A stretch of 64,000 nucleotides of DNA from Basidiobolus meristosporus CBS 931.73 (GCA_002104905.1 MCFE01000372.1:21120-85119); one strand, 5' to 3'. Shown: positions 2,238 to 46,197, numbered from the stretch's first letter. Made by a program: numbers and translations. Notes: generated by a model not told the origin, from the letters alone.

Positions 2238-3069
2238 TGTATTAGATATTAGCAAAGTAGAGATATATGCAAGCGGTTTGCTTGGAATGGGTGCTCAAGT
2301 AAAAGGCTGATGGCCAATACCGGGATCATCCCTGGCTATTTATATTCACGGATTTCGGGTGGATTAATTTCGTCATTGTTCCCGTCAATGAGTCCAATGT
2401 ATGCCATGGAACAATCATGTATGCAATTAAGGACGATTTTGATTCCATGTTTTACCGGATGGATTAATCTGGATGAGCAATAATGCTGAACGGCTATTTC
2501 GTTTCGGCAACTGCCAAGTACCCAAACTTCGCAGCAGAACGTATCTCCAAATTTGGAACTGCGGAAATACTCAATCCGACCTGACAATTGGCCACCACCA
2601 CAGCCTAAGCTAAAATAGGCTTCATCATCAATAATGCGTTCATTGGCATACATAGTGACTCACGCTGACCTACCCAGCCCAAAATTGCGGTAGCCCGCGA
2701 TGAAAAACTCTGAATATGGGCCACCTAGGAATGGATTTTCACTATCATTGATTTTCAAGTGGCATACCCAGTGGTGGTTGGGGAGCAGAGTCTAGGCCTA
2801 CCGCTACCGATGGAGTGGGTGGCTCCGAGGTTTCCTATTAGGTTTAAATAGCTATACCAGTTTCGTCAATGCATACGAGGTTTGATTGGTATAGATCAGT
2901 CCAACAGGGAATGAGCACAGAGCGAAGCACATTAATGTCAACAATTATCCAAATTTGTTTATGTACATTGTGGCGGTAACCGCTTTATACTAATTTAACT
3001 TCACAATAATCACCTTTTGCGACCTCAAATCTGGATTGATCTTCTGGCTTCATTGTTGCTGCCTATTAG

Positions 3070-3375
3070 TTCACTCGCCTCATATGGGTCAAACTTGACG
3101 TTAAGCAGTATATTGAAGATGAAAGTGAGCACCATCTATATCTGACAACAGGACTTGAAGTTTCCTTTTATTTATCCACATTCGGCATACAACACACAAA
3201 ATGTGATAGAGGCCTGATAGGTATTCTGTTGGGTGAACTCGGGAGACAAAGGGCTGAAGTGGTATCTGGCAAGGTGACCTCTTTCCTAGGTCATCTGGAA
3301 AAAGATCTGATGGATCGACCTGAAGTCTGCACATCTAATTCAATACGTTGCCTCGGAAGTAACCGATTGTATTGA
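3070..3375 (+). pseudogene. Probable decayed bestrophin (YneE/UPF0187-like) gene fragment
   Basis: A 102-codon open frame, missing from the ORF track, has motifs collinear with the intact bestrophin at 9889: TRLIW/TRLIW, VKQYIEDE/TKHYLREE, GLEVSFYLSTFGIQ/PLEITIHLTSYIQ, FLGHLEKDL/CLTGFERIL. SAHLIQ/SIHLAQ follows in a shifted frame. Large deletions lie between the blocks and there is no start codon. Confidence 0.5.
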
Positions 3376-3556
3376 ATATCCAGGGATCAATCATTGTCGG
3401 ACACAGGCGTCAGATTGAACGGAGGTTACAGGCAAGAGCAAAGCAGTATAATGCACATCAATATTTTATTTCAACAAAATATGCCAAGAAAAGACTACAT
3501 TATGTGGAATATTATACAGACAAAGTCTACCAATAGGCGAGGGTGCGTGCTTCTTA

Positions 3557-30668: not shown

Positions 30669-33600
30669 ATGAGTTCTGACGACAGCAATATCCAAGATAA
30701 AGGAAAGCTTTGGTCAGAAGCTGAGGAGAATCTAGCTTCTTTAATACAGGATGCATATGACCTGCTACAGAGATCGCAACCAGGTATAAAAACTTCTTTA
30801 TGTCAATCCTAATAATAAAACGATTCTCTTGACATTTTACGAATTTTGGGGTACTTATACACTTCCTATTTGCTCAGAAAAAAGTCAACCACCTGCTGAT
30901 CTTGCTCCTGACCAAGAGTCGAGTACTGAAAAACTTGATGTTGAAATCAACACCAACAACCTTGAGGAAATAGCACCAATCGCAGCAGACGCAGTTGAAG
31001 CAAAGAGCAATATAGAGATAGAGACTACTTTAGATAGTTTAAAAATAGAAGAACAACCTCAAGTTTATGATTTGAGCACTTTTGAGGGAAAGAGTTCATT
31101 CACGAAGGCCTGTCTTGAATTGTTGGTAAAGATTCAAAACGCCATTTCAGAATTCATCTTGAAGAAAGGTTTGGAGTTCTTATGGTATCGTTTGGATGTA
31201 TCACAACCCTAATTCAGCATGAATCTGTAGAAGACACAGCATCTTCTGAGGAGCCACCTGACGTTCTAGGTATTAGAGATCTCAAAGTTGTACACACTCT
31301 GCTTGAGGTTACCATTATATGGGGCATATATCCTTGTTTACAGGATGGTGTCGGAGTGTCTTTGTCCAAGCGCGTTCGCTCCGGATTTGTGCAATCAGGT
31401 GACTACGATATGTGATATTTTTGCACATATTCTGAACTAAACCATTCGAAGAGTTTTTTGAGAGAGAAGGACTATCCGGGTTCCAACTCAAAGAAAAAAA
31501 CGCAAGGCTGTTAGAAATAATACGGACCCTCTGTAATCTATCTAAAAGCTCGGGCATGTTACATTACACTACAGTTTCTTCCATTATCATGAATCGACAC
31601 TTGACCGACATGTATGCTGGATTGTTACAGTTAGCATATGGACCATTGACTCAAAAGAATGTGTCTCAGAGTGCGGACGCCACAGTAAGCATGGACCCGC
31701 AAACTCGTGCTAATAGTGGAACTGCCTTGCAAAGACCTGTAGATCTGTTAAATATGCTCAACTCCAATCCCGCGAAGAAACCGGATACACATATTCTCTC
31801 ACAAGCTGAACGAGAAGAGTGTGTCAATCAATTTGATGACTTGTTTCAACGGTAGATGTTCTTCAAACATTTTTCCGGTACAGATGACTGAAGGTTCAAT
31901 CGAATTTTAGAGCCGACGCATTCAAGAGTCTTGAATCCTTAACATTACTCTTGGGTTCACCTCTTTACCCGTCACCACGTTGGCTATCCAATGTCTGTGG
32001 GCGGTATCTAACCCAAATTCTGCTCAAACCGGATGGGGTTAAGGTAGTCATGAGTTTTATGCTTGACGAAGTGGAGGAAGGTAAATATCTATAATTTCTT
32101 GAATACCAACGGAGTACATGATATTTACACCCTGAAAGTGTCTCTTCCTCAGCTAGAGAGAGTTGCAAAACTTATTCTTTCGGTGCCCCATCAAATCTCA
32201 TCACTTCAGGTAACCATTATTCATTCCCAAGGAATCGCGTGATCTTTATTTAAATCCATGCCTGCAATCGCTAGGAGTACTATAAGATCATAATCCCACA
32301 GTTGCTGTCTTTGATTCAATACAAATTTGCTGATGTGCATTCGAAAGCACCAGAATCCAAGGAGAGAAATGTTAATGAATCGAGCAATATTAGCCGTGCG
32401 GCTTCATTCACTCTTTCGCAAATGATACGGAAGCAACCCAAGCTAGTTTACCGCCTCTTTGTCGGCGATTTGATGAAGCCAATTACCAATTGGTGGTCTA
32501 GCCAAACAGAAATAATGAGCGAAGCTGAAAAGAGCTTGGACAAGTTATTCGAAAATGACGAAGATGTAGTTTTATCTAGTGAAGATATCATTGAGCTCAC
32601 AATTGCAACTGTTCATCGATTACTGGTTGGCAACGAACCGTCACCCATTCTCTTCCACTGTATTTTGTCAGATGCTATCACTCCGCTCTATTATCTCTAC
32701 GAGTTTGCCCACACCAACAAGTCAACCATGAAAGACCAGATTCTCGAAATATTACAAGCATATTTTCGCATTATGGAGACCGATAAAGGGCTAGAAAAGC
32801 TAAAAAGTATTGTTTATCGAACAAGACTTGGGCTGAAAGTGATGACGGTGCACAAAGGATATACCTACTTCACATCGGGGCCTTCTAATGGAATCGTTCT
32901 CGCAAGAACGAAGTATGTCCAATCACATTCATATGCGGAATTACTTACTAATGGCCGTTCATTAACAGCAAACCCAAAGAAATGGACCTGAACACCGAGC
33001 TCTTTGTTGAGTTTCTTAATTCTATGAACAACACAGAGCTCAACGGAGACTTCTTCATTTGGGCATTGACTCAGTATTCCTCTGCTCATACTAACCCAAG
33101 TATGTCTAATCCTCGACAGTAAGTATTCTACAATTCCTGACTTGGGCGCTGCAAACTAGGTTTATCAAAATTTTGCTAGGACGTTGGTGATTCTACACTT
33201 AATCTTGATTATGACTGAATCCTTGGGCCATACAATTCTTAAAAAGAGTACCCAGATTATAGCATTTGCTAACAGCGTGTTGGAAAAGGAAGACGAACCG
33301 GAGATCAAGAATATGCAGCAGAACTCTAAACTTGAATTTTTGTCCAACATTGCTGAAGAACCGGAGGAAAACGAGCAAGACCAGAGCGAGATAGAGTATC
33401 TCGCATTGAGCTTGCTGGGCTCTGTCTTAACAGGTATTGCATTATGCACCGTTCATGTACTTCACAAGAAATATTAATGAGCATCCCATTGTTAAGACGA
33501 CAAAGAATTGTCGACGCAAGACCTATTATTGCTGGATCACACGCAGTCTCTCCTGGCAAGATTTTCGAATCACGCAAACTCTGAAATTCGAAATATAGCC

Positions 33601-34617
33601 AACAATTTGAAGCTAGTCATCGCCACTCGTGTTGCATTTAACCTGAACCAACAGACCACCGGTGAAGATAAACTGGCAGCCTCCAGAAAGCGGTACCAGC
33701 AAGCAATGGAGGCACTCCAAGACCAAATATTGCCAGTGAAGGCCTATGGGATCGGTATCTTGAAAGACATGGTTTTAAAGAAAGATCCCCTGATTGTCGG
33801 CCCGGAGCTAGATAGAGTGCTTGACATATTTGTCTCCATGGTCCAAAATGAAGATAGGTTAGTTGTTGGATTCTACCCAGAATGGTGCTACATAGCCGTA
33901 ACTGTTTTATGCCTGCTAGTTTCATCTATCTAAACGCCATCAAGGGCTTATCAGCTATGACAGATATACATGGTAAAAAGATCTTGACAAAACTACTTGA
34001 TATCTACGAAGATAAAGTGAACCAACCGATGGACAACCGCCTACGTGTGGGCGAGGCACTTCTGCAAACAGTTGAAAGGGCCGGAGAAGTGCTGGGAAAG
34101 TTTGGTAGGGTGTTTACTATAGGCTACGAGGCATATGAATCGTTACTAACACTGTACAGCCGATATCCTTTTGACATCCTTGCTTCGAGTTCTGCGCTCA
34201 CGCGAATCGCCGCACTTGCAAAACTCTGCATTAGCCATCATTGGGGTGATGTGCGAAACATGCCCATACGCCCTTTTACCATGGTTCCGGGAGATCATTG
34301 AGTGGATGGTGACCCTTCTCAAGCTCGAAAAAAGTGTCGAAGTACGGCGAGGTAGGCATGTGCAAAATGCGAACTTCAGACACCACATCACTCACGAAAT
34401 TAAAACCTTTATAGCGGCAGTGGTTTTGTTTGCGTCATTGTTCCGAGGGATGGGTGTCAATGCCATATACGACATTCCCAGTGATTTGCTTAAAGATATA
34501 CTCCACACGTTGAGATTCGTGGAAGCCACCGAGCAAGATGAATTGACAAAATACCACGCCAGGATCGGGCTCAGCGATTTAGATGCTATCATGAAGAATG
34601 AGATCTTCCGTTCATAA
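30669..34617 (+). CDS. RTP1: Rtp1/TANGO6-family HEAT-repeat RNA polymerase II assembly/nuclear import factor, multi-exon
   Basis: The C-terminal block LQDQILPVKAYG..ED-SFIYLNAIKGLSAM..NRLRVGEALLQTVERAG matches the Rtp1_C1 pattern. ATG at 30669, many GT-AG introns, stop at 34617. Confidence 0.82.
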
Positions 34618-35370: not shown

Positions 35371-36549
35371 ATTAGACGTGGTGTGGAAACAAATAGAAGA
35401 GGAATAGCCAGCTGCCTGGGTTTTCGGTCGAAGTGGGACGTTTATATACTCGAGGCAACATAGCCGTTACGAGAATATAGTCCGGAAATCGAAAACTTCT
35501 GTGAGACACCGGTGACACCCAATATTAACGAGTCCTAGGTGGGTGCGGACACAAATATTCTCTCATTAAAGTGGACTATCACCAAGTAGAAAGCATAACT
35601 CAGTTAGGCAATGCAGTTGCTTCAAGAAGTTCCACATCAATATTATGCTCGGAGTAATCTTCAGTAGCAATCTCATGTACAGCTTATTTTGATCCAGCAT
35701 AGACTTTCATTCGTTTAAGCTTGCCTAACAGATCACAGATTGGGTAACGTAATTATTTGGAGACCGGCTTGTGTACCAATTAATACCAATGGTGCGACTA
35801 AAGATATCTTGATGATTTTCCAGCTGAAGTGCGGATGACCCAATGCCACTGTAAACAATGAGACTTCGCGAGTATCATCCATCTTCACGAATCGAATCCA
35901 GCCCAAATGACCGTTACTCGATGTTGTAGCGAACATTCGCAGACACCAATTTCCGTTGTCCAATCGTCGCTGTCGGGCTACGCCATCGCGACGGGTCCCC
36001 CAACTCTCACAACAAGCAGCCGGACAGTGGATGCTTTGACTTTATTCGAAGGACATGCCGATTTTGGAGCGTGAGGAGCTTGTGTTGTTGGGTGGACGAA
36101 ACGAATGCCCCTCGGGACCCTCAGTTGGATCACATGGTTGTTACATTGGTTATCAGTCAACCTTGCGAGGAAAAAGAGTGACCATCGATAAATTACACCA
36201 TTCCTTCTTTGAAACAAGCTTGAATGGATTTCTATACATGAAGAAGATAGCTAGACGTGGACGATTGTGTAACATCTGGAGTTTGACAGGGTTTCAATAT
36301 AACATCGATATATATAGTAAGCGCCCAACCTAATCCCTCAACCGCTATAGGATACTTCTCGCTAATTCCAAGCGAAATCGACGGTCCAATTAATGTCGGG
36401 GCCGTTCGTTACTGGACATTCAATTGCTCGGTTGGTGGACCATTGGGCCCTCTGGATTTTTTCCATTCAGCTTTCCGAGGGCGAAAATCTTCTGGATTCA
36501 TGTATATATCCCTAGAAATGGGTGCTTCCTGTCTTTCAGGAGTTGCAAA

Positions 36550-37410
36550 ATGCGCGGCTGTGTTGGTCATTCCAAGTACCAATGCCTGTTGGGGTTAACC
36601 GGACTCTTGTTGATCTTACTTGCCATACTTCGTGTCTCGCGCAGAGCCACCCCAGTCATGTACGAATACCATCATAATACCACTGGTAGGCTAATTTTTA
36701 TTGGTGACGTTCATGGGCATTTGCGCTCTTTCAACAAGCTGCTCGAGAAGCTGAGCCTGGTGCCGGAGGATCGAGTGGTTCTGCTAGGCGACATGGTGTC
36801 GAAAGGCCCCAACTCCATAGGGTTACTTGCTCGCGCAAAAGAAATCAATGCGCTCTGCGTGCGTGGGAACCACGACGACCTGGTAGTAAGTTGGAGGGAC
36901 TTCTTCAAGTGGAATCGTAATAGCTGGGTTATTGGGGAAGAGCATCAGAACATCGCTAGGTATCTTTATTCGCCAACTCCACATGGCAGGCCAGGCTATT
37001 TACTACCAATGTTCTTTTCTAGTGCCCTGCCACAGGAGCTGTACGGATATTTAGCTAGCTGTCCATTGATCCTCCACATCCCTGCATATTCCATGTATGC
37101 CGTTCATGCGGGCCTGGACCCATATACGCCTGTCCACCTACAGAACCCATTTTACGTGATGAACATCAGGCGCATTCTGCCAAATTCCCGGCCGTCCAAG
37201 GGTAAGGACGAGGGGATCCCCTGGGCTACAGTTTGGAACAGAATGCAATCGAAATTGAGGAATCCAAAAACCGTGATATACGGCCATGAGTCCTCCCGCG
37301 GCTTGGTGACCTTGCCCTATGCAATTGGTCTGGATACTGGTTGCGGGCGGGGCGAGAGGTTAAGTGCCATGATCTATCCCCAGCGAAGGCTCATCAGTGT
37401 TAAATGCTGA
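36550..37410 (+). CDS. Calcineurin-like metallophosphoesterase with N-terminal TM anchor (Ppn2/ApaH-like polyphosphatase family)
   Basis: Motifs IGDVHG, GDMVSKGP, VRGNHD, VHAG, YGHE and GLDTGC. A hydrophobic LLGLTGLLLILLAIL follows the ATG at 36550, giving the type-II membrane topology known for yeast Ppn2. Confidence 0.88.
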   Translation: MRGCVGHSKYQCLLGLTGLLLILLAILRVSRRATPVMYEYHHNTTGRLIFIGDVHGHLRSFNKLLEKLSLVPEDRVVLLGDMVSKGPNSIGLLARAKEINALCVRGNHDDLVVSWRDFFKWNRNSWVIGEEHQNIARYLYSPTPHGRPGYLLPMFFSSALPQELYGYLASCPLILHIPAYSMYAVHAGLDPYTPVHLQNPFYVMNIRRILPNSRPSKGKDEGIPWATVWNRMQSKLRNPKTVIYGHESSRGLVTLPYAIGLDTGCGRGERLSAMIYPQRRLISVKC

Positions 37411-37834: not shown

Positions 37835-39011
37835 TCAGGTCGCAATTGATAGCAGTTCTGACAGCTCGAGCAACTTCCGCTCCAGCTGCAGGACCGGTAT
37901 TTTCGGGCGGTGGCAGTATCTCCAGCGTTGGATTCTGGATGTGGTGATGCTAGGGGAATGGGCGACTCGGTTGAGTTGCTGGTGGACAGATGGCTTTGTG
38001 TGGACCAGCGCGATTTTCCCCTCGTCATCCTTGGGTAAGATGTCGATCACCGACCCGGTGACCCGCCTGACCTTGTTTCGCCAAACGCGGAACACTATGT
38101 GGCGCCATTCCCTCGAGAGGCTGCTGACCTTCTCAAGCTCTCTGGTATTTAGAAATTCGAATATGGTTTCCATGATCTCGGCGGGAAAGGCAGGGTTTGG
38201 GATGGAGGAGAGAGAGGACTGGGGCAGCGCGTGGTCATCAGAGCGGCTGAGGTCCATTTGCTCGATGCGTGTCTCCGAGTCGATGATGGCCTTCAAGGAT
38301 TTCACCTCAATCTCCAACCGGGTGGCGGCCAGGAAGGAGATCAACGAGTGGTATCCATAATAGCCAGGGGAAAGGCCGATCTTGATTGGGCTGAGTTGTA
38401 ATGTTTTGGGCTGTATGTGGAAGATTGCGGGATAGATATAGGTGTTGGATGTGGTCAGACCCAAGCTACGCGCTAAGGCCATTTCCTCGTCCGCCAAAAA
38501 CTCTACTCTCCCTTCATTCGTATCATTGCGGAGAGTGTAATACGACCTGGCCTCCAAGACATCATTTAAATTGCCGGGAAGTAGTATGAGAAACAGTGTA
38601 TCCCATCTTAGCAATATTCTGTTTAGCTTCACAAGACGCTATCAGACCAAGGTTTCCTAAGATTTGCTATCAAACTGCCTTACCTCCAGGTCTTCCTGTG
38701 AGATGGTCAAGGTGGTTCCGGTAAACGGATCTGTAAAGGTTTCATTGGAGTCCTCATTTTCCAGTCCGATAAACTTTAGAATCCTAAGGAGCTGGGGGCC
38801 GATAGGGCAGCGTAAAGACTAGGGAAACGTGCACGGTTCTTGTTTAGTGAGCTGTTGCAATTGAGGCACTCAGTCTGGTAATACGTACACTGACGGTAAT
38901 CAGAATGACGTGAACAAATTGCGTCAGACGTTCCAGGTCTAATACTTTCCCCTCAGCCGTCACTAGTTTCTTTGGGAGCATCTTATTCTGAGTCTCTGCT
39001 AATTGAAGCAT
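37835..39011 (-). CDS. Three-exon protein: N-terminal thioredoxin/AhpC-TSA-like domain + C-terminal F-box
   Basis: Spliced: ..FVHVILITVS-SLRCPIGPQLL..TLFLILLPG..VEFLADEEMALARSLGL..IYPAIFHI (redoxin-fold pattern), then PAFPAEIMETIFEFLNTRELEKVSSLSREWRHIV (F-box). The introns are GT-AG and in frame. Confidence 0.72.
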
Positions 39012-42227: not shown

Positions 42228-45200
42228 ATGTGCCTCAAGCTGTCACTCTCTGCAATGTCTACTACTGCTATTACTGGAATTTTTCTCTCTGCTGAAAAGT
42301 TGGATGGATCTAACTACCAAGTGTGGAAGGTGAAGATGAAGATGCTGATACAAGAAAGAGGTCTTTGGGATATTGTCATGGGAGAAGAATGCCCTCCTAA
42401 AAATGTGGGAGAGGAAGCCTTGAAGTGCCAGAAGAAAGAACAAAGTGCCTTTAACTGCATTTGCCTTAATGTCAAAGACAAATTGTTAATTCAATGCTCA
42501 AGAGCAAAAACAGCAAAGAATGCCTGGAAGGCATTAGAAGACACCTACCAGTCATGTTCAGCTGCTAAGAAAATGTATCTGAGATGAAAATTCTTTACTA
42601 CAAAGATGCTACCAGGAGAAGAAATGAAAAATCTAATTAACAGAATTACCTTGATGGTAGATGAGATGGAATCTGTGGGTGTACTGACTACTGGTGAGGA
42701 TGTGATAGTTACCGTCCTGAATAGCCTGACAGACAAGTTTCAGGGCCTTGTATCAGCCCTAGAGTCCAGAACTGAAGATTTGGCCTTAAATTACGTATAT
42801 GGAAGGCTCCTGGATGAAGAATTAAGAAAATCAAGCACCAATAAGAAGGAAGAAGAAAATGCTTTAATAAGCAATGATAGCCAACAAAGGAGGTACCCAA
42901 GACCCTACAAAGGCAACACTAACCTGTTTTGCAACTACTGCAAAAGGAAAGGACACACATCAGACTAGTGTCTCAAAAAGAGAGATTATCAGCAAAAGAA
43001 GCCTGAATATGGAAATGCTGCAACAACTGAAGATAGGCTATTCATATCTGCACTAAATATGACCACAAACAAGGATTCTCAGATGTGGTATATTGACTCC
43101 GGAGCTTCTCAACACTTTACACGCCAAAAAGAACTTTTTATCCAATATCAAGAAATTCCAATTAAGAAGGTTTTCATGGGTGACAATAGAACACTTGATA
43201 CAGTGGGAGAAGGAACTATCCAAGTAAACCTTAGAAGCAGTGAAGGAAGCCATACACTGACTTTTAAAGAAGTACTCTATGTACCAGAAATAGCCAAGAA
43301 CTTACTCTCTGTAAGCAAGGCCACAGCAGAGGGACTCAGTTTCAGTTTTGACATTTCTGGATGCAGGATCACTGATCAAAATGGTGCCCATATTGCTCTG
43401 GGTATCAGAGATCAGAATCTATAGAAGTTGACTTATATTCCATCATATCTGGAAGCCAATATATGTAACTTAAATGAAGAAACACCAATGCTTTGGCACA
43501 GGAGATTTGGACACACCAATTTTGATTATTTGAGTAAAATGATCAAAGATCAGCTAATTTCTGGGGTGAAAATTGATTCCCCAGCTAATTTGGAGCACTG
43601 TGAAGCCTGCATATATGGGAAACAAGCCAGACAGTTGTTCAAGAGCTCTTGGTTAATCAAAACTAAGAAAAAATTAGATGTAATTCACTCAGATCTGTGT
43701 GGACCTATGCAAAATTTATCCTTAGGCAGGATGAAGTGTTTAATTATTTTATTGATGATTATACAAGATACACATGGGTCTACTTCATGGAGAGAAAGGA
43801 AGAAGCTCTGGTTAAGTTCAGGGAGTTTAAAGCCATGGTGGAGAGAGAAACTGGTGAAAAAATCAAGAAAATACGCTCTGACAATGGTGAAGAATATACC
43901 TCAAAACTCTTCTTCCACTTCTGCATAATTCATGGGATAAAGCAAGAGACTACTGTGCCATACTCCCCACAGCAAAATGGAGTAGCAGAACATGCTAACA
44001 GATCAATAATTGATATGGCAAGATCTATGATCCATGATCAGAAATTATCCTATGATTTTTGGGCGGAATCAGTTACCACTGCTGTTTATCTTAAAAATAG
44101 GAGTTATAACAGAATACTTTGTGATTCTACTCCATTTGAAGCATGGTATGGATACAGACCAAGTGCAGAACATCTAAGAATATTTGGGTGTACAGCACAT
44201 GCCAAAAAACTGGCCGGAAATCAGTCAAAATATGAGCCAAAAAGTGTAAAATGCATATTTTTGGGCTACTGCAATGAGACTGAGGCATACAGACTCTACA
44301 ATACCAAAGCAAGAAGCTGATCAAGTCCAGGGATGTGTTGTTTGATGAAAATTCAAAGTTTTCACAAAAAATGACATCAGATGATGACAAAAATTTGATC
44401 TCAAGTCCACCAATTGTCAGGATTGAATCAGAGCAAAACAATGAATATTTTTTCACTCCAGAAGACTCTACAACTGTGGTTCAGCCAGAATCTGTGCCCA
44501 GGAGTATCCCAGAAGTGATCATGCCAGTATCAAATGCTTGGAGATCCAATCAGACAAGAAATAGCCCAAATTACTACATCAATGAGGGTACAAACTTAGC
44601 CTATGCCTATTCAGTCCATATTGATGAGCCCCAGACTGTAAAAGAAGCCCTAAATAGCCCTCAGACAGCATTTTGGAGATCTGCAATGACTGAGGAATAT
44701 CAGGCCCTGATGGAAAATCAAACTTAGGACTTAGTCAAATTACCAATCAACCAAAAATCAATTGGATGCAGATGGGTCTTCAAGACAAAATACAAGGCTG
44801 ATGGTACAAATGAAAGATACAAAGCAGGACTTGTAGCCAAAGGATACTCTCAAACAAAAGGACTTGACTATAATGAGACCTTTGCACCAGTAGCCAAGTT
44901 TAATTCCATCAGATTAATATTGGCTATTGCAGCCAAATATAAGTTTTTTATTCATCAAATGGATGTAAAAACTTCATTTTTAAATGGAGAACTTGATGAG
45001 GATCTGTATATGGACCAGCCTGATGGGTTTGTTGACCAAGATAACCCTCATTTGGTCTGCAAGCTTAAAAAGTCACTATATGGTCTCAAACAATCACCAA
45101 GAGCCTGGAATTGCAAGATAGATTCTTATTTGGAATCTTTGAGTTTCAAAAGGAGTAATGCAGACTATAGTATATACTATAAACCCAATAGAGCAAATCC

Positions 45201-46197
45201 AGCTCTACTAGCTCTATATGTGGATGATCTTATTATAGCCACCAATAACCTAGAAACATTGGAAGAGACAAAATACAGCCTATCTAAGGAGTTGAAGATG
45301 TCCAATCTATGAGAACCTAGTTACTACTTAGGGATTAAGTTCTCCATAGACAGAAGTACCCAGACTATTACCCTAAGCCAATCCAAGTATATTCAAGATA
45401 TACTAAAGAAGTACAAAATGGAAGACTGTAAACCAGCAGCTGCCCCAATGGAGACAAACTTTAACTTCATCAAAACTCAACCAAATCAAGAGAGCTTGGT
45501 GCCATCTGAAAGCCCTGACTTTCCTTATCAATCTACAATTGATAGTCTGATTTATATCATGCTTGGAACACGTCCAGATATTTCATATTCAGTGGGAGTT
45601 GTCAGCCAACATAATCAGAACTATGGATCTGATTGTATTGCAGCAGTTAAGTAGATTTTTAGATACCTAAAAGGAACTGCCAATATCTGCTTAAGATACA
45701 CTTACAAGGATTCAGAACAGGATCTTGTGGGATACTCTGATGCTGATTGGGGACAAAATTTGGAAGACAGATGATCCACCACACAGTACACCTTTCTTTA
45801 CTGTAAAGGAGCAATTTCATGGAATTCAAGAAAGCAACCAACCGTAGCACTTTCTACCACAGAGGCAGAGTACATGGCAGCCTGTGAAGCTACAAAAGAA
45901 GCAATGTGGTTAAGAATGCTTTTTACAGATTTAGGCCTATGTCAAAAAATGTCTATTACATTATTTTAAGATAATCAAGGATGTATACAATTAGGTAGAA
46001 ATCCAACTTTTCATGCTAGAACCAAGTACATAGATATTAGACATCATTTCATATGTAAAGCTATAGAAAATGACTTAGTTAGCTTAGCTTACTGTCCTAC
46101 AGATGAAATAATTGCAGATATATTTACCAAACCACTAGCTAGAGACAAGTTTGAATATCTTAGGTCAAAATTAGGATTAGTCAGTATGAACATTTAG
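42228..46197 (+). pseudogene. Copia gag-pol pseudogene
   Basis: KLDGSNYQVW (gag N-terminus), CNYCKRKGH (Zn knuckle), WYIDSGASQH (protease), LWHRRFGH, HSDLCGPM, PQQNGVAE (integrase), QMDVKTSFLNG, LYVDDL (RT), ALSTTEAEY (RNase H). Broken by many stops and frameshifts. Confidence 0.95.

Follow-up and report, generated by a model that had tools for sequence, protein, structure and literature searches.

Results

The redoxin–F-box locus

The window, that is to say the whole 64,000-nucleotide stretch of the Basidiobolus meristosporus CBS 931.73 genome that was analysed, carries on its minus strand a three-exon gene that runs from an ATG at 39011 to a stop codon at 37835. Its product is the 353-residue hypothetical protein K493DRAFT_339906 (hereafter P0001), which is predicted to comprise a redoxin domain, a long linker helix, an F-box, and a C-terminal helix (Table 1). 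A tblastn comparison of P0001 with the translations of exon 1 and of exons 2 and 3 revealed that every aligned residue was identical. The public version of the protein, which includes the four residues RLVK discussed below, was used in all whole-protein steps. The neighbourhood contains a calcineurin-like metallophosphatase gene, an RTP1/TANGO6-like gene, and a Ty1/copia element, and nothing in it hints at the function of the redoxin–F-box gene. A Metallophos gene is also found within 4 kb of the orthologue in Basidiobolus ranarum, with two other genes in between.

Table 1. Features of the redoxin–F-box gene and of its surroundings, with positions counted from the first letter of the window and residues numbered as in P0001.
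Feature	Position	Strand	Description
Exon 1	38889..39011	-	41 codons, ATG at 39011; 100% match to P0001 residues 1–41, which form the N-terminal β-hairpin and core strand β1 of the predicted redoxin fold; followed by GTACGT donor
Intron 1	38819..38888	-	70 nt, phase 0; GTACGT donor, ACTAAC branch, TAG acceptor
Exon 2	38684..38818	-	45 codons; opens with SLRCPIGPQLL; active-site loop R-C45-P-I-G48-P, helix α1, family-specific insert with invariant D71-P-F; GTAAGG donor at end
Cys45 codon	38809..38807	-	TGC, exon 2
Gly48 codon	38800..38798	-	GGC, exon 2
Intron 2, favoured	38627..38683	-	57 nt, phase 0; AAG acceptor, CTGAT branch site at normal distance
Intron 2, public model	38639..38683	-	45 nt, phase 0; adds residues RLVK
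Exon 3	37835..38626	-	rest of redoxin fold, linker helix, F-box, C-terminal helical region; includes stop codon 37835..37837
Redoxin (thioredoxin-fold) domain	38357..38984	-	residues ~10–180, split by both introns
cis-Pro156 codon	38431..38429	-	CCC, redoxin domain
Long linker helix	38234..38353	-	residues 182–221; extends last redoxin-fold helix; holds invariant R193 and E197
F-box	38066..38188	-	residues 237–277; Pfam match and three modelled helices
C-terminal helix	37841..37894	-	residues 335–352; block pLDDT ~95
Calcineurin-like metallophosphatase gene	36424-37410	+	converges on 3′ end of redoxin–F-box gene
RTP1/TANGO6-like gene	~30.8-34.6 kb
Ty1/copia element	42.6-45.3 kb

Gene model and splicing

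The original prediction had proposed upstream exons that lie outside the ORF track. These exons are real: they have canonical splice signals, they match P0001, and they are separated by conserved introns. All the strings quoted in that prediction are present on the minus strand as placed; SLRCPIGPQLL is the start of exon 2, FLILLPG, EFLADEEMALARSLGL, and YPAIFHI are all located in exon 3, and a helical stretch and then FPAEIMETIFEFLNTRELEKVSSLSREW are located downstream. Exon 1 was also matched by Mucorales homologues (tblastn). The B. ranarum orthologue (locus L001) and a second B. meristosporus gene, the canonical paralogue described below (locus L002), are both interrupted at the same two positions and in the same phase, by introns of 60–65 nt; the counterpart of intron 1 measures 63 nt in the gene for the B. 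ranarum protein P0002 and 60 nt in the B. meristosporus paralogue. Exons 1 and 2 supply the hairpin, the first core strand, and the active-site helix that the predicted fold needs, and the strands encoded by exon 1 were found at residues 15–17, 23–25, and 34–39 of the AlphaFold2 (AF2) model. Splice signals and comparison provide good evidence that exons 1 and 2 are spliced to exon 3.

The acceptor of intron 2 differs from the public annotation in our preferred model. Because the residues RLVK are absent from all 29 other aligned family members, and because a CTGAT branch site precedes an AAG acceptor located 12 nt further downstream, it is more likely that exon 3 starts at 38626 after an intron of 57 nt, which would give a 349-residue protein, than that the annotated intron of 45 nt is used. 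Exon 3 of the B. meristosporus paralogue opens at the equivalent F-N-R-I-L-L. Both versions of intron 2 preserve the reading frame.

The N-terminal region adopts a predicted thioredoxin fold

The N-terminal region had been proposed to be thioredoxin-like, with AlphaFold and Foldseek suggested as the check, and four kinds of structural analysis agree on this fold: (i) the AF2 model of the domain, computed from a 27-sequence domain alignment, had a pLDDT of 90.8 and a pTM of 0.87; (ii) Foldseek returned 407 PDB matches at E ≤ 1e-3, with BCP/PrxQ-type and other peroxiredoxins in the lead, and DsbE (1lu4) and DsbF (3ios) also matched the fold; (iii) VIA gave its best Z, 12.6, to 2a4v (rmsd 2.8 Å over 150 residues) and reached Z ≥ 8 with 629 chains; and (iv) the Atlas shape search matched a bacterial AhpC-TSA/Redoxin cluster (TM 0.62/0.82, rmsd 2.0 Å), and the independent model of the ESM Atlas itself gave a concordant result. 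These predicted structures support the assignment of residues ~10–180 to a thioredoxin-fold redoxin domain of the AhpC-TSA/Redoxin type, whose N-terminal hairpin and central insert are shared with peroxiredoxins and with TlpA/DsbE-like proteins.

The motifs from which the fold was first recognised had been mapped correctly. A strand precedes the Cys, the Cys motif is placed at a helix N-cap, FLILLPG is a core strand, EFLAD and the following helix form the central insert, and YPAIFHI is the cis-Pro strand. Pro156 is located directly before the strand of residues 157–161 in the AF2 model, and "cis" was assigned to it by position. A family-specific insert of ~35 residues (about 61–98) separates helix 1 from the core strand that follows; it contains a hairpin and a helix as well as the D-P-F motif.

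Sequence searches with this protein itself brought out no redoxin domain. The exon translations had no redoxin match at E ≤ 1 in Pfam or NCBIfam, and residues 1–225 of P0001 had no PDB match at E ≤ 10 by phmmer. A family profile searched against the PDB gave three weak matches (E 0.37–1), each to a small protein that is thioredoxin-like or uncharacterised and each with the CxxC in register; a sequence search of the PDB with the relative P0027 gave nothing useful, the best match being a spurious designed protein. Relatives nevertheless scored above the Pfam cut-offs, namely P0027 for AhpC-TSA (33.0 versus 26 bits) and P0011 for Redoxin (26.9 versus 26.6 bits). Since P0001 has no redoxin profile match of its own, the redoxin call rests on homologues and predicted structure, and membership of P0001 in the redoxin sequence family would be transitive, through these homologues.

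The family consensus at the active site is of the dithiol type

The first reading of the locus placed a Cys at the redoxin CxxC site, with the second Cys replaced by Gly. The columns of the 27-sequence domain alignment bear this out. Around the Cys, the consensus of the family reads L-I-T-L-K-x-x-W-C-P-V-C-P-x-L-L. The first Cys (Cys45) is present in 27 of the 27 sequences; the second Cys is present in 23, so that C-x-x-C, mostly as W-C-P-V-C-P, is the common form, and it is replaced by Gly only in the Basidiobolus clade (three sequences) and by Ser in Spinellus. The Pro of the cis-Pro loop is found in 26/27. A third Cys, in F-I-x-x-C-P-G, is found in 20/27, and an Arg (position 175), in G-R-x-P-G-x-Y-G, in 23/27; each of these 2 residues is Leu in the P0001 clade only. 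Also invariant in all 27 sequences are Gly59, Asp71, Asp99, Pro107, Gly174, Tyr180, Leu189, Arg193, and Glu197.

The peroxiredoxin motif P-x-x-x-T/S-x-x-C is absent from the family throughout this alignment: position −7 from the Cys is Ile, Val, or Leu in 27/27, and position −3 is Ala in 11, Ser in 9, Asn in 4, Asp in 2, and Lys in 1, and Thr in none. In what we take to be the region of the peroxiredoxin active-site Arg, the family has a thioredoxin-type loop that contains Pro. The earlier term "AhpC-like" therefore holds for the fold, as AhpC-TSA structures match it, and fails in the sense of a peroxidase. Because C-x-x-C and the cis-Pro are conserved and the peroxiredoxin motif is missing, the ancestral domain looks like a TlpA/ResA/DsbE-type dithiol oxidoreductase, with C-P-x-C and a cis-Pro, rather than a peroxidase.

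The family shares with TlpA, ResA, CcmG, and DsbE (Pfam PF00578 and PF08534) a thioredoxin fold with an N-terminal β-hairpin and a central strand–helix insert, and its consensus also has the W-C-x-x-C at the helix 1 N-cap and the cis-Pro before β3. The differences are as follows: (i) the TlpA/ResA/CcmG/DsbE proteins are single-domain reductases of bacteria, either exported or anchored in the membrane, whereas the family is fungal, and no signal sequence was evident on reading the family sequences; (ii) the family has the ~35-residue insert after helix 1 with its invariant D-P-F, the G-R-x-P-G-x-Y-G loop, and the C-terminal F-box; and (iii) P0001 is without the second Cys. The best structural matches, with TM scores of 0.69–0.71 normalised by target, were the BCP/PrxQ peroxiredoxins, namely the yeast nuclear thiol peroxidase Dot5 (2a4v) and Sulfolobus Bcp1 (3drn). 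They differ from the family in having the peroxidatic motif in place of C-x-x-C and cis-Pro, and identity to them is 10–16%.

The F-box, the linker helix, and the C-terminal region

The F-box and the helical linker before it, both recognised in the original prediction, were confirmed by the Pfam cut-offs and by the full-length AF2 model, which is compact with a pTM of 0.84. Residues 237–277 scored 27.2 bits against PF12937 (gathering cut-off 24.3) and 24.3 bits against PF00646 (gathering cut-off 20.5), and the predicted structure has F-box helices at residues 239–246, 251–258, and 262–286 with pLDDT values of 91–95. The Foldseek matches were taken up by the redoxin domain and included no F-box structure. 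Weak alignments were obtained between the F-box of P0001 and those of FBXL5 and FBXO22.

The region after the F-box is short and poorly conserved overall, with a conserved L-P-x-x-x-G element. It continues through a disordered stretch (residues 302–322, pLDDT <50 in the full-length model) to the C-terminal helix, which aligns with a helix-like C-terminal stretch of other full-length family members. No recognisable repeat domain was found after the F-box by Pfam scan, in the full-length model, or among the structure matches. This partly disordered region of about 75 residues could be the true substrate-binding part.

A folded domain ahead of an F-box had been presented as a departure from the normal order, and its rarity was overstated. 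In FBXL5, which senses iron and oxygen, and in KDM2A/B, the F-box likewise comes after a folded domain, a sensor or an enzyme, and these proteins offer a precedent for control of SCF ligases that responds to small molecules or redox state. FBXL5 has an N-terminal hemerythrin domain and C-terminal leucine-rich repeats (LRRs) that bind the substrate; P0001 differs in having a redoxin domain upstream and no recognisable repeats after the F-box.

Distribution of the redoxin–F-box family

With P0001 residues 1–225 as the query, HMMER was run exhaustively against 1.84 billion representatives and found 46 relatives, most of them 300–450 residues long and 22 of them at E ≤ 1e-10. All the named relatives belong to early-diverging fungi (chytrids, Mucoromycota, and Zoopagomycota), and no Dikarya or non-fungal protein was among those named. 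The Zoopagomycota members are from Basidiobolus and Neoconidiobolus; the Glomeromycotina members are from Funneliformis, Paraglomus, and Diversispora; the Mucorales, Endogonales, and Calcarisporiella members are from Zychaea, Gongronella, Halteromyces, Spinellus, Benjaminiella, Choanephora, Apophysomyces, Pilobolus, Mycotypha, Jimgerdemannia, and Calcarisporiella; and the chytrid members are from Powellomyces, Spizellomyces, Gaertneriomyces, Geranomyces, Borealophlyctis, Rhizophlyctis, Synchytrium, and Polychytrium. Among the 30 full-length members, an F-box-like domain was detected in 22, AhpC-TSA in 5, and Redoxin in 3 (E ≤ 0.01). The proposed order, with the redoxin domain N-terminal to the F-box, is thus that of a real fusion kept across early-diverging fungi.

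The relatives are labelled as hypothetical, uncharacterised, or "F-box domain-containing". Some family members have already been tagged with both Pfam domains by automated databases. The statement that no functional description of this architecture was known agrees with our searches of the full-text literature, in which no paper describing a redoxin–F-box fusion was found, and such absence is no proof.

A degenerate copy and its canonical paralogue

P0001 and the B. ranarum proteins P0002 and P0003 share the motifs C-P-I-G-P, L-L-P-G, and G-L-S-P-G. In this clade, the second Cys is replaced by Gly48, the third Cys by Leu106, and the groove Arg by Leu175, and the residue before the first Cys, which is Trp in the family consensus, is Arg or His (Arg in P0001). 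P0001 thus has C45-P-I-G48 in place of C-x-x-C at the N-terminus of helix 1, and Cys45 is the sole Cys of its redoxin domain. The cis-Pro loop before β3 is present, with Pro156 retained, and all ten family-invariant residues are kept. From the topology of the thioredoxin fold, we infer that residues 106 and 175 are near the active site.

In the phylogenetic tree, the C-P-I-G clade (P0001, P0002, and P0003) has a support of 100/100 on a stem of 1.0 substitutions per site, and it is sister (83/95) to B. ranarum P0004, which has the canonical motifs C-P-I-C and L-C-P-G. Elsewhere in the tree, the branching agrees broadly with the fungal phyla, which suggests vertical descent. P0001 is one of two Basidiobolus paralogues, the one that changed fast on the long stem and was then conserved. 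Between B. meristosporus and B. ranarum, exon 3 has a non-synonymous difference of 0.26 and saturated synonymous sites (pS 0.76–0.91). Selection was judged from pN << pS, as dN/dS is uncomputable with saturated synonymous sites, and the comparison points to purifying selection on the degenerate copy since its burst of change. That Cys45 persists in the C-P-I-G sequences is weak evidence either way, as these are only three and closely related. The Spinellus protein P0032 has independently lost both the second Cys and the cis-Pro, and its gene is kept; that is to say, the family can persist without thiol chemistry.

The canonical paralogue of B. meristosporus is located on contig MCFE01000758.1 (L002:2358-3441), with its ATG at 2358, a first exon that ends at 2477, and further exons at 2538-2672 and 2734-3441. 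Its public model, P0052 (147 residues), takes an internal Met as its start and leaves out the entire redoxin part. The paralogue resembles the P0001 gene in its three exons, intron positions, and domain order, with 34% identity over exon 3. Its motifs are A-P-G-C-P-I-C-P, L-V-L-C-P-G, I-W-P-S-I-L-H-I, and F-G-R-E-P-G-F-Y-G, so that C-P-I-C, L-C-P-G, W-P, and G-R-E-P-G stand against C-P-I-G, L-L-P-G, Y-P, and G-L-S-P-G in P0001.

Discussion

The observations as a whole are best explained, with a chance that we place somewhat above even, by a redoxin-fold F-box protein that acts on Skp1, this copy being a pseudo-redoxin receptor without disulfide cycling. The product, 349 or 353 residues long, would be an F-box protein of the cytosol or the nucleus. 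Its F-box would dock it on Skp1, and probably on Cul1 too, and the redoxin domain, as the only sizeable folded module, would be the partner-recognising or regulatory part. A thiol–disulfide mechanism is plausible for the canonical members. In P0001, three conserved residues have been lost together, which argues that disulfide cycling has most likely been abandoned; the groove of its thioredoxin fold would more probably serve as a binding surface, as in a pseudoenzyme, and Cys45 could at most form a mixed disulfide or carry a modification. The architecture is well supported, and redox sensing and an SCF function are putative; thiol-dependent substrate reception and Skp1 binding are conceivable, and the case for both is weaker for P0001 than for the canonical paralogue because the second Cys, the third Cys, and Arg175 have been lost.

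The thiol-state-dependent receptor of the original prediction would be a natural substrate trap, in which Cys45 attacks the disulfides or sulfenic acids of oxidised clients, stays covalently bound to them, and presents them to the SCF ligase. C-x-x-S/G variants of thioredoxin are the standard laboratory trapping mutants, and the C-x-x-G layout of P0001 resembles them; the invariance of Cys45 (27/27), the retained cis-Pro156, and the purifying selection on the copy would also fit a trap. We nevertheless regard it as unlikely, since Cys106 and Arg175, inferred to be near the site, have gone along with the resolving Cys and the Trp has become Arg, a pattern of dismantling rather than tuning, and since the Spinellus gene persists after the loss of its second Cys and cis-Pro.

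A sensor, in place of a receptor, is unlikely to the same degree. Here, the redoxin domain would sense thiol redox state, or a metal or ligand held by its Cys and Asp residues, and thereby control how stable or how active the F-box protein is, with the C-terminal region binding the substrates. The domain order is that of FBXL5, to which the P0001 F-box weakly aligns, the region after the F-box has the L-P-x-x-x-G element and the confident terminal helix, and the canonical members have three conserved Cys together with the invariant Asp71 and Asp99. On the other hand, a C-terminal region that is short, partly disordered, and poorly conserved is a poor candidate for substrate binding, and the putative sensing residues have mostly been lost in P0001.

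Less probable than either is a role outside ubiquitin ligation, in which the F-box merely recruits Skp1 as a non-SCF partner or anchors an oxidoreductase beside a complex. Non-SCF roles of F-box proteins exist, as in yeast Rcy1 and the RAVE and CBF3 complexes, and the ancestral domain, with its C-P-x-C and cis-Pro, looks catalytically competent; the data hold nothing specific against this reading.

That the gene is an annotation artefact or a decaying pseudogene, in which an erroneous gene model has fused two unrelated pieces, is highly improbable. The acceptor of intron 2 is uncertain and the gene model rests on signals and comparison, but the fusion is found in at least 22 of 30 relatives across three fungal phyla, the intron positions are conserved, the frame is open with the invariant residues kept, pN << pS, and the full-length model folds with confidence; together these observations speak against both a gene-fusion error and a pseudogene. 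Least probable of all is a peroxiredoxin (an AhpC/TSA-type peroxidase) fused to the F-box, a reading prompted by the best structural matches (2a4v, 3drn, and the Prx1/Prx6 families) and rejected on the motif columns, in which Ser at position −3 reaches only 9/27 with Thr never present and C-x-x-C and cis-Pro are conserved instead, and CxxC proteins of the DsbE/DsbF type match the fold too.

The preferred reading, a pseudo-redoxin receptor on Skp1, can be set beside a broader and more speculative proposal, which we rank below the trap and the sensor and above the non-SCF role. The family might be an ancient fungal mechanism that ties the oxidation of protein thiols to ubiquitination, in which the canonical members read or resolve client disulfides and P0001, as a monothiol copy, traps oxidised proteins through Cys45 for the SCF ligase, that is to say, acts as a disulfide-based degron reader.

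Both domains are well known, and it is their fusion that represents an undescribed type of accessory domain for an F-box protein; this gene adds to it a degenerate monothiol paralogue and its duplication history. The analysis also corrected two public gene models, at the intron 2 acceptor of P0001 and at the start of P0052. The specificity of an SCF ubiquitin ligase comes from its F-box protein, and proteins of the thioredoxin fold both detect and alter protein thiol states. Joined in one protein that is conserved across three phyla of early-diverging fungi, the two domains would link redox state to targeted protein degradation in a direct and testable manner. The family is approachable through transformable relatives that carry it, namely the chytrid Spizellomyces and several Mucorales genera. 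The Basidiobolus pair, a canonical dithiol protein and a single-cysteine copy, is a natural experiment, and the partners of the two proteins would tell thiol chemistry from groove binding.

Gene models of the redoxin–F-box family

Intron 2 of the window gene is 45 nt long if spliced at its annotated acceptor, the TAG at 38639, and the public protein P0001 then carries 4 additional residues (RLVK), which are present in no homologue. An alternative AAG acceptor lies 12 nt downstream of this TAG (window 38627–38638) and gives a 57-nt intron 2 that has a proper branch site. P0001 is probably 4 residues too long. The public model of the canonical B. meristosporus paralogue (P0052) begins at an internal Met, within exon 3, and leaves out the 2 exons before it; the omitted sequence, some of it from exon 3, encodes the entire C-P-I-C redoxin domain. 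The full paralogue gene has 3 exons, with a structure as in the window gene.

In P0038 and P0039, 2 proteins of about 210 aa from Logan assemblies, the redoxin-domain match is confined to the first ~60 residues (19–80 of the query, P0001 residues 1–225) and is located C-terminally (residues about 126–191). These proteins either have a different architecture or are fragmentary gene models.

Features of the window and the paralogue locus
Feature	Location	Strand	Evidence
RTP1/TANGO6 homologue, multi-exon	window 30829–34617	+	ARM_TANGO6, RTP1_C1, RTP1_C2
Calcineurin-like metallophosphatase gene	window 36424–37410	+	Pfam Metallophos, 49.3 bits
Ty1/copia-type retrotransposon	window 42606–45312	+	gag-like zinc knuckle, integrase rve, RVT_2
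Canonical redoxin–F-box paralogue	L002:2358–3441 (MCFE01000758.1)		K493DRAFT_308427 (P0052, 147 aa)

Genomic neighborhood

The metallophosphatase gene is convergent with the F-box gene, toward the 3′ end of the latter. In B. ranarum, too, the orthologue has a Metallophos gene in its vicinity (L001:1–110), which suggests loose synteny around the redoxin–F-box gene between the 2 species. The multi-exon gene encodes a homologue of RTP1/TANGO6, a factor for the nuclear import of RNA polymerase II. The retrotransposon is split over several ORFs; thus, it probably contains frame breaks or is degenerate.

A second loss of the active site

In P0032 of Spinellus fusiger (KAI7861516.1), C-K-L-S occupies the position of the family C-P-V-C, Ser replaces the cis-Pro, and G-I-R-E-G replaces G-R-x-P-G. 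This protein represents an independent degeneration of the family active site: for a second time the thiol site has been lost naturally while the gene has been retained.
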